Source: Dicyema japonicum
Taxonomy: Eukaryota > Animalia > Dicyemida
NCBI GenBank assembly: GCA_011109175.1
Contig: RDEW01000104.1
Location: 15,133 to 79,132 of the forward strand
Direction of reading: 5' to 3'
Length of the DNA stretch: 64,000 nt
Shown in pieces: positions 23,182-41,920 of this stretch (positions are counted from its first letter, which is position 1; every line of letters starts with the position of its first letter). The position numbers and the translations under genes were made by a program. The notes beneath the pieces were generated by a model. That model was not told the DNA's origin and ran no database searches. It saw only the letters and a list, made by a program, of their open reading frames with translations.

Positions 23182-24752
23182 TTAATCTTCTGTTTTTAAT
23201 AGAGAATCAGGCAAATCACTGATTGCACTACAATTTGAGAAATTTCTTAAATGATTTTGACCAAGAAAATCCTCGGCATTCAAAGTGTCTGATTTAGAAG
23301 CCAAAAGAACATTCTTTGGACCCTCAACCTCTTCAACATGCTGAGATATCGGCTTCGACATAATACTGCTAGAAAAAGAAACAGCGCTTCCATCCGAAAA
23401 ATTCCGAATGTGAGATTTATCGATTTTTAGTTTACTTGGAACTTTTTTTCCCGCCTTAAAAGCCTCAGCATGTTTATCCAATGTCTCAATGTAGCACTTC
23501 CTAGAGATCTCCTTCAAGGACTCAAGCCTCGCAACAGAAGGCTTCCTTGAGCTCACCAAGGATTACCTCAACCCCCGAATAATCAAAGACCCCGATGATT
23601 GAAGCAGGGATGCGGTTGCTGATGAGCTTCCCGAGACGATGGCGACTCAGGGCAAAGACATAGGGGACATTCTGCTCTCTGCACAACGTCAGCATCCTGT
23701 CAATGCAGTCATTCAGCCCACCTGACATTACACAGTAAATAAACCCTTATCCTTGATATTCTCGATATTAGGGGCAACCAGTAGCAGTCGTATTCTCTTG
23801 TTAGTGAGGTGTTTGATCACCTCCCGAATCCCAATTGTGAAGCGTAGTTTGGTTTTCGCCTAAATAGCAAGGACTCCCTACCTTATAAGAATTCTTCTGC
23901 ATATTCCTGTTCTGGAAGAACTTCAACCGTTCCACAATCTCTGAGACCACCTCATCGATCTCAATAGTCGTGAAGTGATCACAGTATCTGGGATAATCAC
24001 TTGAAGCTAACTCTCGGAATTTGTCACTGTGGATGACCTCTTTGGCCATCTTAATGAAGGTGAGGTCGTCGTTTGGTGGAATATCTTCTTCCCTGTCCTC
24101 ATTGGGCCTATTCCGCTCACGAATTATCACCAATTTAATGTTGAAAGCAAAATACCTTCTTTAATGTGGTCAGTCGGCCTTTCTCGGACTTTTTTCCGGG
24201 ATAACTTTTCGGCGCGGAAGAATCAAGAACATTTAACGGATTCTGGTGGTTTGCAGGCCTTAGAGTTGGTTTACTCGAGACTTTAACATATTTTGAAGGG
24301 TCCTTGGCTGTCTCTGGTAACTTTAACGGTTCCGGGTTCTGAAATACTAAAAAAACGTGAAATTACGAAAAAATCAACGAACTTCCCCCTTCTTGACTTT
24401 TCTCGTTTAAATTTGGGTTGTTCTAATTTTGTTGTGAGGTCACTCATTCCATTGGTGATCTCTTAACGTTATTTTAACGGAAGACCTTCGACTGCGGGAG
24501 GGGGAGCCACAGGGTCGGGAATTGGGGGAGAATTCTCATAAGTAGGACAATACTGACTTTGGGCTTGGTAGTAGAAGTACATGGGGTCATAGTAATATCC
24601 CCCATAATATATAAACGGCTGTTGGGGGTAAATATTTTGATAATAAAGTGGATTGGGAGCAGGAAAGGCATAATTGTTGGGACTTTAAGGTGAATTTGAA
24701 AATAAAACTTTTTGAAGCTCTCGTTGCCGTTATTCCCCTTTTCTGAGTTCAT
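23182..24752 (-). CDS. SECISBP2: SECIS-binding protein 2 (SID plus L7Ae domains), ~7 introns including a GT-TG intron
   Basis: Spliced NVLDSSAP..GKKSEKGRLTTLKKVIIRER (SID), KAKTKLRFTIGIREVIKHL..APNIE..GGLNDCI...EQNVPYVFALSRHRLG..SIIGVFDYSGVE (L7Ae). Confidence 0.88.
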
Positions 24753-35824: not shown

Positions 35825-38522
35825 ATGTCACTTAAAAGTTCAGTAAAGGAGACTTTTCGGTCGATCCTAGAAATGAATACCCAGAAAATGATCAAAGGCA
35901 TCCGTTCATCTTCTGACGAATCAGCTTACATCTCAAAATGTATTGACGAGATTCGTGAGGAGCTTAAAAGCACAAAAATTGAGAGTAAAGCCAACGCCCT
36001 AAACAAACTTTCCTACGTTCGTTTGTTGTGCCTTACTATTAGCTCCAAATGCTCGGCTACAGCGTCAGCTGGTGTGCTTTCTCTATCGTGGAGGTCATGA
36101 GTTCTGAAAAGCTCCAAGTAAAGGTACAACTTTGTAAGCAACTTAAGAAAGTCGGGTATTTGGCTTCCTCCCTGATATTACATGAAGGGTTAGAAATCCT
36201 CCTTCTTCTCACAAATTTGCTGAAAAAGGTCATTTTGTGACAAATTCCTTAGGATTTGCACAACCGTAATCACTTGATAGCTAGCTGGGCTCTCCACGGA
36301 ATTTCCTGTTACTGCACCTCCGACATGGCCGTTATCCTCTTCGAGGACGTCATGACTCTGGTTGGCTTTGTTTAAGACGAGATTTCCTCAACTTCCAACG
36401 ACGTCATCCGTCAGCGTGCGATAATCGTCCTCCACAAGATATTCATCAAAAATCCCTTATCTCTCAAACATGCCTTTCCAAAGCTACAGGATCTCCTCAA
36501 CAACCCTAACGAAGGAGTACAAATGTCCACGATCACTCTCCTCGTCGAACTGGTTCGCCACAACCCCCACAATTATATACTCCTGGCTCCTTCCCTCTTT
36601 AATATGCTGAAGGATCCCCTGAGCTCGTGGGTTCACATAAAACTTTTGAGAATTGTAGCCTTACTTGATTCAGCCTAGTTTTCCTACCTCGTTAAGGCAG
36701 AACCCCGACTTTCGAAGAAGCTGTTCGACCCGATGATGTTCTGCCTCAAAAGGTTGGCTTTGTCTCTACGATTAGCCCCCAACCAATGTCCCTGACTTTT
36801 GAATGCATTAATACCGTTATTTCTACTGGTTTACTTAATTACTAAGCATAGATTTGTCAAATGAGTCCATAAAGGTCGTTTCCGTCATTTATTCCAGTTC
36901 TGTCTTCAAAGACTATCCCAATTGTTAAGGGACGATGACCCCAATCGTTAGCTTTCCCATTTACTTTAGTCCGGTACCTCAGCCTTCTCTGTATGTCTCG
37001 GATTCCTGTTCAATTTAACCACGTCTTGCTGGACTTCCACCAGTCGATCACGAACTGCTTAAATGAACTCGATCAGTCAATTCGCTACCGTGCTCTTGAG
37101 TTGATATGTCGGCTGGTATCCACGTGGCTTATTTCAAGGTCGATCGCAGCAATCTAGTAGTTTCCGTTGAATGTCTGAAGAAAAGTATCTCCCAATACAG
37201 AGGGGACTACTGTGGAAGACTCATTGCCGCGATTATTAACATCTGTAAGTTCAACGACTACGAAAACATTTCAAATTTCCACTGGTTAGCCGTTTAGGGT
37301 ATTTCAGGTATGTGGCCACTCTCGTTGACTTGGCTTCCTTCGAAAACGACGAAAACGTGGTCGAAATTGTGGACCAGTTGATGATCGTGGCTGTTCGTGT
37401 CAAATCTGCCAGAAAATTCATCGTCAAACAAATGGTCCCTTACTTTTATAATCCCAGACTATCCTTATTGCCAATGTTGTGAACTCTACCAACGTGCTTT
37501 TCGGTAGGAACTTCCACGTGGTCTCAGCCGCTGCTTGGATATGCTCGCAATACTCTGAGTTGTCTAATATTTTGAGTTTAGGCATTTAGACGACATTTTG
37601 GACACAATTAGACTGTTCAGTCGGATTGCCAGGTTGTGTACTTACACTGTGGAGTGCTTTGTCCACCAGAGTTGTGTGCAGGCTATGACCCGTCTGGTGG
37701 TGGAACTGATATGCAAGCATGGACGCTGTCCAGTCCTCTCTGTTGCTAGAAGTGAGTGGAGGGAGCTTCTACTTCCCTTCCACCAAAGCCAAATCATGGA
37801 AATCCAAGAAAGAGTGTATTTGTTAGGCGATTATGCTTTTATAGAGCTGTCTCTTGGAAGAACTCCTGGAAATTGTTTTTGACGTTGATTTGTTCACTGA
37901 AGAGGAAGTCATTGCCTGTTGGAAGCCTATCTTTGAGTCTGAGTTGAATCCAGTAATTAATCAGGTTCAAAAGAAAATCCCGATTCCTGATGGGTCGCTG
38001 ATTTTTGCTATTTAGACTCGATTTGGACAAGTGGATTAGCAAACCACTGGGAGAAAAGACTGAACGTAGGATTTTGAGCAAATTTGCTCCCACTTTGAAT
38101 CTTGAAGTACCTATTCCGATTGAAGATAAAGAATTTCCACTAACTCAGCCCAATGACACGATTTGTATGATTATTTTACCATTTTAGTGAAATTGGCTAA
38201 ACCTGAGGATTTTGTGGAAAATTTTGATATTCTGAATTTTGAGAATTTGAAGATGCCTAAGAAAAATGTGAAACTCACTTCCGTTGTGGCGAGTGAGCCA
38301 ATACAGGTTTCGAAGGTTGTTGACGTTCCTGAGGTTTTTCTGCTTACTATGGTAGGGGATTACTTTGTCTACCACGGAAAATCAACCGTGTGTTCAAAAC
38401 GAGTTTGCCTTCCTTGACTTGGATAAGATTACGGCAGAACCCAAAGTAAAGCCAATTCGTAAAAAACGCATAAAAAAGCCTAAAGTGCATCGACCTGATT
38501 ATTAAAGGGTGATGTGACTTAG
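35825..38522 (+). CDS. AP3D1: AP-3 complex subunit delta, ~18 introns, no C-terminal ear domain (stop at 38505, or 38522 if a final 23-nt intron is spliced)
   Basis: YISKCIDEIREELK, KANALNKLSYLQMLGY, LLLTNLLKKD, EPRLSKKL, IRYRALEL, ELNPVINQVQKKIPIPDGLDLDKWI, FLDLDK. Confidence 0.93.
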
Positions 38523-38619
38523 GATTTAAGTTTTATTATTAATTTAATATTGACAACTAATTTTCGTGATTATTGAATGATATTCTAAGACTTTGTCGAA
38601 TGAGTCCATAAAAGACTTT

Positions 38620-38900
38620 CACTTATGATTTAAATTGCTAGAACATGTAAAATACCCGATTATGTTAAGGCTTTCAGAGTAACGGAGCTTTGGATTTGTG
38701 GAGAACACCAGACCAATGCATCTGGAGGCTCTTATGAGACTAGACTCCAAATGCCAAAATGCGACCTCCTTAAATTCAGTTAGCCGTCATGTAGGAGAGA
38801 GGAACACCGGGAAAAGATGAGGTAACTTATGGAACGCATTGGGATCACATGATTGTTAGTTTAGTTTTACCGAGGTCATGGGATTTTACATATCAATAAA
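38620..38900 (+). mobile_element. LINE 3' fragment
   Basis: CTTATGAGACTAGACTCCA...GAACACCGGG shared with 45780-45900; GGGATCAC at 38841. Confidence 0.75.
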
Positions 38901-39277
38901 CTATTTGAATGCAATTATATGTCTAAGAATCATAATGTTAGAATTCCTTATAGAGAATTCATGTATGCTAAGATAGAGTTAGAATGAACATATTGGGTAC
39001 TACAAGTCTTAAGAATGCCTTAGAAACTTCAAGTCGTACCTTTATGTATTTTAATTCTCATTTTGTTAAAAATTTAAGCAAAATGTGGATACCGCCTATG
39101 TATCGAAATCAACAATGTTTAGAGTTAAAATGACTCTTATAACTCGTAAGAATGCCCAACATGCAATCTTCAGTGATACCAAGCATCTCCCTTAAACCCA
39201 TGATATCCATTTTAAGAATCACCAAGTCTACAGTAACACTGAAGACACGAGACCACAGAATAAAGTACATTTTACAA

Positions 39278-41332
39278 TCACTGATCAAGTGTAATTAAAT
39301 GTTTGATGGTTGGTCTACCATGAGGACAATTCTACCATAATTCACTCCTCTTACCCAAGGCTGGTCGATTGTGCCCAAATTATGGACAACGTCACGCATC
39401 TTCTTCACACTCAAAGTCATCCCAGCAAATATTGCACTGCGACAGGCACGTGAGGCCATATGTACCCTTACTTTGTCCCTCACTCCTCCAGCATGCAGCA
39501 TTTCTTCAACGTCTCCAAATACCACAACATCACCAACCTTGTATGGCAGAGTCCACACACAGAGAAGGGACACGAGTAACCAGAACATCGTCTTGAACTT
39601 AAAACAAGATAAACCCTCAGAAATCACAAAATCGAACCCACAAGAGTTAAAAATGCAGAGATTGTCTATCAAAGTCTGTTTATCCAAGGGACCGAGAACC
39701 AACCGTTGTGGACTACCGATATTTACATCCCCCAACCGTATCAGTGGCTGAGAGGATGTGTCTGCATGTGCAATTAATTGCTCAAATTTGAACTTTTCGT
39801 CAGCGGCATGCTGATCAATAATAAACAGACGAAGAGGACACTCTGGGAGGCGGACAATAATAAAGGAGGAATTGAACTGCCCAATCACTTCCATTCGAGC
39901 AAAATCGTCGCGTTTTAACTGACACAAGTCTATTTTCTCGTTAAACTCGTGATTTTCCAGAATAGTGGACATATACGAGAGTTTCTGAGAGACAGTATCA
40001 TCAGAAGTCACGGAAAAATTTACATCATCCACGTGGGGTGAATCTCCGAGGTAAGCATGAAAGATTTTGGTAAAATTTTGCTGAGTAGCAGAAACATGTC
40101 TCTTGTTGTCCCTTTTAATATCAGGAGTTGAACTTTGGGGGACGGAAAGGTCAAATTTTAGGCCCTTTTTGACGACGCTTCCCTGAGAAAGTCTGAAGCT
40201 CTTTTCCGTGGAAGGACGTTTACTTGAAAAAAGAGAGACTGGAGGAGAAGGATGAAATGAGTTGAGAAGATCAGACAAATGTTCCTGGTTGTGACACAAG
40301 AAAACTTTAAGAAAGGCCAGAAGCTCATCCTCGTGCGAGATCATGACTCCATCGGTCGTAAAGTCGACTTCTGACTTTGCTGCGATTACCAACAAAAATA
40401 CATTCAACGTCGAGGAACAGAAACGGGCAGTTAGAACCGTTTACTTCCCTGAAGATCCCGTTAACCAAATGGCGAACCTACAAACTCTTCAAACCCAAGA
40501 AACTCTGGGAAGGTCACAGGGACGTTTATTAACGCAGACAAAATGCCGACTTATCCGACCACGTGCAGATGAAGGGCGGGAAATAATGCCAGAAATTCAA
40601 AAATCAGAAAAAATTGAAACTTGAAATTGCTTTCCTGTTGAGGCTTGACAACTGTAATAGAATTGGCCACAGCCTCCCCAAACACAGATAAAATGACATC
40701 CAGCAAGTTCCCCCCATTTGTCTGGAGTAAAATATTTCCGTTGTTCTTCAAAGTAAATTTAATATGAGGAAAAGCAAGGAGGTAGGGGTGTAGAGCCTGA
40801 AGCACTGAGGAGATCCCACATGTGCGTAAGAGTTCTTTTCTACGCACAGGAATGGTTCCCTCGAACAGATCCCTGATTGTAACCGTGGTTCCGTAATTGC
40901 GGGAAGATTTTTCCACTTTACGGGAATCCTTGACAATTGTTAGCCGATATGAAAGTGAAGAGTCAACTCTACGACTGAGAACAGTGACCGATCTGAGGTT
41001 AAATCGTATGGAATACAGGCTTAGGTTGAATATAGCAGACAAGGCCATTCCGCGGAAGCCAAAAGTTCCCACGTGCTTCTTTTTGGATGTCCCTCCATCA
41101 CAAAGTAAGCCCAGGTCGTCTTCCGATATGCCTTCCCCGTCATCGGCGACCTCAATTATTCTACTGCCTCCTTCAGAGAGTGAAATGTCTATAATATAGT
41201 AGATGAGTCACTGATTGTCTTTGAATTGGCGTCAACACAGTTCTCAATTAGTTCTATAATAACTGAGGCAACACTCCTTGCAATTTGGCTGCTGGTAATT
41301 TCCTTTGCACAATCCGTGCTTAGTTTCTTCAT
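39278..41332 (-). CDS. PMS2: Mismatch-repair endonuclease PMS2 (MutL family), ~9 introns including a GT-TG intron and a GAG-acceptor intron
   Basis: ELIENCVDA, DDGEGI, TFGFRG, GTTVTI, NKRPCD; C-terminal GQFNSSFII, DQHAADEK, MASRACRSAI, NCPHGRPT. Confidence 0.93.
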
Positions 41333-41429
41333 TATTTTATTTAAATTTTCTTTAATTTAATTATTTTATTTATTTTTTGATTAAGTTTTTATTTAAATTT
41401 AAAATTTGATTTTTGTTTAAATTTCTCTT

Positions 41430-41920
41430 AACACTTGATCCAACAATCAATAATACCCAAGTATTCTCCCGACCATAGTTGGAGCTTCTATACAAACAAT
41501 TTGTTCTATCGAGTATCGAGTACTCCTGTGCGCATGGGTTGCACCACTATCGCTATCGGCACAGAACAAGCTGGAAGTGCTACAAAAACGATGTCTCAGA
41601 ATATTAATGAGATCATCCAAAAAAACACCCACGTCGTTACTACGAAGAAAACTAAACGTCCCCCCGATCATGGAATACTTTACGAAACACCACGAGACTT
41701 CCTCGAGATGGAAAAGTCTCCTGATCATCCTCTCTGGATGGGCATCGAACTATATCTGGACGCCTGTCCGAGATACGAGAAGAAACCTTTCCCGTTGTGA
41801 TGATTAATCCAGGACTCCAAAATTACCCTCAGGAAAAAAACTGGAATAGACACTGGGATCACTTAATTAGACGATAACTCTTGTCCTATTTCACGTATTT
41901 CCGGGATTAATAAATTATTA
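41430..41920 (+). mobile_element. LINE 3' fragment
   Basis: LQKRCLRILMRSSKKTPTSLLRRKLNVPP; GGGATCAC-TTAATTAGACGATAACTC shared with 48739. Confidence 0.8.

Follow-up and report, generated by a model that had tools for sequence, protein, structure and literature searches.

A probable sole TG acceptor in an ancestral 23-nt intron of a PMS2 homolog from Dicyema japonicum

Introduction

Few signals of eukaryotic gene expression are as invariant as the AG that ends introns. In a PMS2 homolog of Dicyema japonicum, a parasite of octopuses, a 23-nt segment that interrupts the reading frame begins with GT and ends with TG. Is this segment an intron that the spliceosome removes at a TG, or does it mark a gene whose acceptor has been lost? 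According to published reports, the D. japonicum genome comprises 67.5 Mb with 36.7% GC and very short introns (PMC6736024), and dicyemids have kept ancestral intron positions while their introns shrank. The annotated splice signals are described as reduced to GTa and AG, the pyrimidine tract is absent, and the location of the conserved A residues depends on intron length (PMC13644364). To answer the question, we analyzed the window, that is, the whole 64,000-nt stretch of D. japonicum DNA (28-44% GC), and contigs from four genomic runs.

Results

Gene model of the PMS2 homolog

The segment lies in a gene model for the endonuclease subunit of MutL-alpha (Table 1). Based on similarity searches, the exon pieces match the N-terminal domains of MutL, MLH1, and PMS2 in the PDB as well as the Pfam families DNA_mis_repair and MutL_C. 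For exon 3, the PDB matches to MutL, MLH1, and PMS2 have E values of 3e-7 to 1e-5, and for exon 4, five of the five PDB matches are PMS2. Additionally, the 35-aa piece of exon 4 aligns with profile positions 25-56 of DNA_mis_repair at an E value of 0.0047, under the curated cut-off, and MutL_C is matched at 6.7e-8. The model combines an N-terminal GHKL ATPase with a DNA_mis_repair transducer, as expected of the MutL PMS2/PMS1 subfamily. The endonuclease motifs of these proteins are DQHA(X)2E(X)4E, ACR, and C(P/N)HGRP; all of them are present, as DQHAADEKFKFE, SRACRS, and NCPHGRPT, together with the MutL_C domain. The PDB and Pfam matches thereby support the placement of the intron in the MutL/PMS2 transducer domain by the preliminary description of this locus.

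Table 1. Features discussed in the text, in positions of the window
Feature	Positions	Strand	Description
PMS2 (MutL-alpha endonuclease subunit) homolog	39278-41332	minus	ATG at 41332, stop TGA at 39280-39278; 8 exons, 629 aa (model)
Intron 1	41189-41211	minus	23 nt, GT-AG, phase 1
Intron 2	40993-41016	minus	24 nt, GT-AG, in frame; assigned by homology only (6-residue gap in the PDB MutL alignment)
Exon 3	40621-40992	minus	ends ...VVKPQQESNF + AA
Intron 3	40598-40620	minus	23 nt, GT...TG, phase 2 (AA|A, Lys); T in 15 of 23 letters; ends ATTTTTG
Exon 4	40504-40597	minus	A + ISGIISRPSSARGRISRHFVCVNKRPCDLPR; aligns with human PMS2 residues 269-301
48 nt discarded under the first downstream AG	40550-40597	minus	third base of Lys codon + ISGIISRPSSARGRI + two bases of next Ser codon
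Intron 4	40478-40503	minus	26 nt, GT-AG, phase 0, between R and V
Intron 5	40380-40401	minus	22 nt, GT-AG, phase 1
Intron 6	39713-39736	minus	24 nt, GT-AG, in frame (putative)
Intron 7	39332-39354	minus	23 nt, GT-AG; joins DQPW to NCPHGRPT
Second GT...TG candidate	24131-24155	minus	25 nt; removal joins ...GRLTTLKK to VIIRERNRPNED...

The model contains seven introns, with lengths of 23, 24, 23, 26, 22, 24, and 23 nt in order; six of the seven have GT-AG ends, and these six span 22-26 nt. The in-frame 24-nt segments at 40993-41016 and 39713-39736 would leave the frame unbroken if they were not spliced. At the latter site, the unspliced reading has eight extra residues relative to what we take to be the human PMS2 sequence.

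A HMMER search with exon 3 against 1.84 billion representative proteins returned nothing above 38% identity, and this protein library therefore holds no dicyemid PMS2. Among eukaryotic PMS2-like proteins, the closest (P0023, 927 aa) has an intronless gene that lies beside a DHHC gene on a 25-kb Logan contig (run SRR33927557). Its source is an intron-poor eukaryote, and because its gene has no introns, this protein is uninformative on intron position.

Frame and borders of the 23-nt segment

In a direct reading of the minus strand, the 23 letters from 40620 to 40598 contain no internal AG; they are preceded by TTCAA and followed by AATTTCTGGC, and their excision yields ...QQESNFKISGIISRPSSARGRISRHFVCVNKRPCDLPRV. 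When the segment is left in place, the upstream frame, which ends in ...VVKPQQESNF and then AA, continues for 22 more codons and then meets a TAA. In the downstream frame, the codon directly on the 5' side of ISGIISRP... is a TGA stop, composed of the terminal TG of the intron and the first letter of the exon, and this TGA pins the acceptor to one exact spot. The GT at 40620-40619 is the sole phase-compatible one, and among GT-started cuts, only the 23-nt removal joins ...ESNF-K to ISGIISRP.... Borders moved by one base were rejected; the ends then become AG..TT or TT..GA. Furthermore, the length equals that of two other introns in the same gene and is the modal length.

The first AG downstream of the TG lies 48 nt further on, at 40551-40550, in frame, and the exon would then begin at 40549. 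Its use would create a 71-nt intron and remove 16 residues, including ISGxIS. The letters thus bear out the earlier reading of this site, namely, a 23-nt GT...TG segment on the minus strand at 40598-40620, an unspliced frame that stops at TAA, and a nearest AG 48 nt away whose use would cost 16 conserved residues.

With respect to intron class, the 5' end carries the GT/GC expected of a U2-type intron, whereas the 3' end lacks the expected AG and reads TG in the contigs of four DNA runs. A branch-site-like yUnAy motif is present as CTGAT at intron positions of about 13-17, with a putative branch adenosine at A17, six letters from the end; an A at position 17 is common to all three 23-nt introns of this PMS2 gene. 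U12-type minor introns tolerate varied terminal dinucleotides, and their consensus is RTATCCTT at the 5' end with the branch box TCCTTAAC. Judged against this consensus as generally known, the 5' end GTTTCAAT is unlike RTATCCTT, and no TCCTTAAC box occurs in the intron.

Genomic reads at the acceptor

To examine the DNA at the site, the window was compared over 38300-41700 with contigs from four runs, all of them from one sample. The runs are genomic, as the contigs stay collinear with the window in every intron and in intergenic DNA, with 0 joints at canonical introns. At 40598-40620, no other letter appears in these contigs at depths of about 35-620; this reading holds at the contig level and for one sample, since contigs drop rare variants. 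An AG at 40598-40599 is accordingly not supported, and the agreement of the four runs speaks against a sequencing error.

The contigs differ from the window at 40507, 40686, 40707, 40812, and 40997. At 40812 and 40997, the letter differs in all four runs at full depth (partially in run X4 at 40997), so the predominant haplotype in this sample is not the assembled one. These two differences point to population heterogeneity in the parasite sample. Moreover, because the contigs that carry the TG differ from the window elsewhere in the gene, the TG is real DNA and belongs to a haplotype distinct from the assembled one.

Alignment of the alternative joins

Three splice models, using the TG, the distal AG, or an upstream GT...AG 23-mer, were aligned with eight eukaryotic PMS2-like proteins. 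The TG model is free of gaps, with ESNFKISGIISRP placed against PDYKIHGYISKV and its relatives. At the join itself, FKISGIIS stands opposite YKIHGYIS of eukaryotic PMS2, and beyond it, VNKRPCDLPRV stands opposite VNRKPCDLPRV. The preliminary description had predicted that the removal of 23 nt gives the MutL-like FKISGIISRP, and the gap-free alignment agrees. In contrast, the distal-AG model opens an 18-column gap inside a conserved PMS2 block.

A window-wide census of acceptor dinucleotides was also performed on ORF pairs with a codon-usage score and short exons; every dinucleotide "solved" most pairs, and the filters lost both known TG candidates.

Position of the intron relative to human PMS2

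Downstream of the TG intron, the first residue is placed opposite I269 of human PMS2 in an ungapped alignment, and the end of exon 4 aligns with K301|V302. The split Lys codon (AA|A, phase 2) therefore corresponds to human Tyr268. The human exon borders were taken from the names of clinical variants: c.803+2T>G, c.804-2A>G, c.804-1G>T ("acceptor site of exon 8"), c.903G>T p.Lys301Asn, and c.903+84. As 803 equals 267×3+2, human intron 7 (c.803|c.804) lies in codon 268 in phase 2, and as 903 equals 301×3, human intron 8 (c.903|c.904) lies between codons 301 and 302. The Dicyema TG intron thus shares both codon and phase with human PMS2 intron 7, and the next intron also matches, with the 26-nt GT-AG intron 4 at the position of human intron 8. 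The human intron 7, unlike that of Dicyema, is long and ends in AG. Furthermore, Dicyema residue 41, at intron 1, aligns with human residue 55; with the human intron 2 border presumably at c.163|164, intron 1 probably occupies the position of human PMS2 intron 2.

Because the TG intron and the next intron sit exactly at human positions, the segment at 40598-40620 is an old intron rather than a random frame-breaking insertion. The shared positions are in line with the published retention of ancestral intron sites in dicyemids. Its codon and phase, together with an otherwise intact gene, support the earlier claim of an intron with GT and TG borders at this site.

As a separate observation, position 40599, the -2 letter of the acceptor, corresponds to human c.804-2, where A>G is a pathogenic splice variant; the Dicyema gene, which appears to work, has a letter other than A there.

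A second candidate and the flanking DNA

The second GT...TG candidate in the window, at 24131-24155, gives ...TTLKK|VIIRERNR... upon removal. An in-frame AG lies 15 nt downstream, and its use would produce a 40-nt intron with the loss of VIIRE. Because of this AG, which falls within the 28-nt range of the TG-AG tandems known from human TG acceptors, the second candidate is weaker evidence for a sole TG acceptor. The earlier suggestion that TG is a constitutive acceptor in this organism goes beyond what this window can tell, as six of the seven PMS2 introns end in AG and the second candidate has an AG close by.

In the flanks of the PMS2 gene, 38642-38755 and 41378-41700 have word depths of about 30-130 times the single-copy value in the four DNA runs (for example, 2,375 versus 42 in run X1), and loose ends and divergent contigs are numerous there. 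These segments are high-copy repeats on both sides of the gene. At full depth, the contigs of all four runs contain an additional 20 letters after position 38664, and the assembly seems to lack these 20 nt at the repeat edge. Scans of the window for Rfam families and tRNAs gave no match.

Discussion

An ancestral micro-intron with a TG acceptor

The intron identity and the borders of 40598-40620 are well supported by the letters, the frame, and the alignment. We consider it probable that PMS2 is a working gene, that the segment is one of its ancestral spliceosomal micro-introns, with T instead of A as the -2 letter of the acceptor, and that the spliceosome still removes exactly 23 nt.

The most serious rival, which we regard as unlikely, is that a recent A-to-T mutation destroyed the acceptor. 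In this case, either the AG 48 nt downstream would be used or the intron would be retained up to the TAA, and PMS2 would be either impaired or a young pseudogene. In favor of this reading, the distal AG is in frame, and human AG>TG mutants are reported to activate neighboring AGs (PMC2374985). Additionally, human c.804-2A>G, in the same intron and at the same position, leads to a frameshift and disease, and a defect of mismatch repair could conceivably feed the fast evolution of dicyemids. Against such a lesion, however, the 48 nt that would be lost under the distal AG still encode ISGxIS and 10 more residues that align with PMS2. The remainder of the gene is also undecayed: apart from the TG acceptor, no feature is broken in the frame, the motifs, or the six canonical introns. 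The polymorphism is mostly silent as well. Within the gene, the runs depart from the window at six sites; three of these changes are synonymous, one turns Ile into Met, and two are intronic, one in each of the in-frame 24-nt introns (40993-41016 and 39713-39736). Under neutrality, with a chance of about 0.75 for each change to be non-synonymous, the probability of at most one such change among four coding changes is about 0.05 in this tiny sample. The mostly silent polymorphism is thus no more than suggestive.

It is very improbable that the TG is an assembly or sequencing error, or a minor allele, and that the true letters are AG. No support was found for this beyond the location of the site after a run of five T, and it is opposed by the four runs, whose contigs read TG and represent a haplotype with letters other than those of the window elsewhere in the gene (one sample, with rare alleles hidden at the contig level). 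We give equally little credence to the use of another canonical intron, the upstream GT...AG 23-mer at 40656-40634, followed by readthrough or recoding of the TGA before ISG. This 23-mer has GT-AG ends, the modal length, and the right frame, and would give ...SITQFQVSIFSDF-TGA-ISGIIS. However, a stop codon would have to be decoded in a gene whose own stop is TGA, and VVKPQQESNFK would be replaced; its final FK is matched by YK/YT in PMS2 relatives. Least probable of all is that there is no splicing, and that a ribosomal frame change (-1/+2) on the T-rich stretch, where a run of six T lies within the 23 nt, or a U-to-A editing of the RNA restores the frame: any shift before the TGA meets that stop, no slippery heptamer occurs in the upstream frame past the TGA, seven unrelated residues would be added at an ancestral intron position, and we know of no U-to-A RNA editing.

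Placement of the 3' end by geometry

Removal of intron 3 at its TG raises the question of how the 3' end could be selected. Published structures of the C* and P complexes show two pairings at the 3' end of the intron, one between its last G and G+1 of the 5' splice site and the other between A(-2) and the branch adenosine. In introns of 20-27 nt, the branch adenosine would lie about 6 nt from the 3' end, and because this distance is so short, geometry could bring the 3' end into the catalytic center. Distance would then be the main determinant of its placement. With a TG, the last G is kept, and the contact with G+1 of the 5' splice site would be kept with it; what would be lost is just the weaker contact of A(-2) with the branch adenosine. 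Early recognition of the AG by U2AF35 would also need to be dispensable for such introns.

We lean slightly towards a broader view, in which a minority of the 20-27-nt introns of D. japonicum are spliced at sole TG acceptors without a nearby AG. The 3' cut would be set by the distance from the branch point or from the 5' end together with a final G, and the early AG check by U2AF35 would be relaxed or lost in an animal.

Comparison with known splice sites

TG 3' splice sites have been verified in 36 human genes, in U2-type introns (Szafranski et al. 2007, PMC2374985), where they occur solely as alternatives at most 28 nt from an AG and never as the sole acceptor. Similar to these sites, the Dicyema intron begins with GT and ends with TG, the letter at -3 is a pyrimidine (TTG), the +1 letter is a purine (A), and the intron is otherwise ordinary. 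Unlike them, it contains no AG, no competing AG lies within 28 nt, and the nearest one is placed 48 nt downstream in conserved coding sequence. The preliminary description spoke of an undescribed splicing system; this was overstated, since TG acceptors are documented in human U2-type introns (PMC2374985), but a sole TG acceptor 48 nt from any AG would be new.

The canonical GT-AG micro-introns of D. japonicum, as characterized in three reports (PMC6736024, PMC2222250, PMC13644364), resemble PMS2 intron 3 in the length of 23, the GT start, an A near the 3' end, the lack of a pyrimidine-tract requirement, and the ancestral position; intron 3 differs from them in its terminal TG. No description of a sole TG acceptor was found in the available portions of the literature on Dicyema introns.

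Gene prediction may bear on this silence. Both TopHat and AUGUSTUS assume canonical intron ends. In the genome report, introns were called with TopHat and genes with AUGUSTUS (PMC6736024). GT-TG introns would have gone uncalled in the published annotation, because the tools and the logos assume AG.

Significance

If the TG is used, this sole TG acceptor would be a new variation on the known TG 3' splice sites. If a lone TG removes an ancestral intron in an animal, the locus would be a natural example of a 3' splice site chosen by geometry, and it would help to establish what the second catalytic step minimally requires. In addition, published Dicyema gene models, which were built with GT-AG-only tools, would truncate or mis-join such genes. 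Finally, whether PMS2 functions bears on the very fast sequence evolution of dicyemids.
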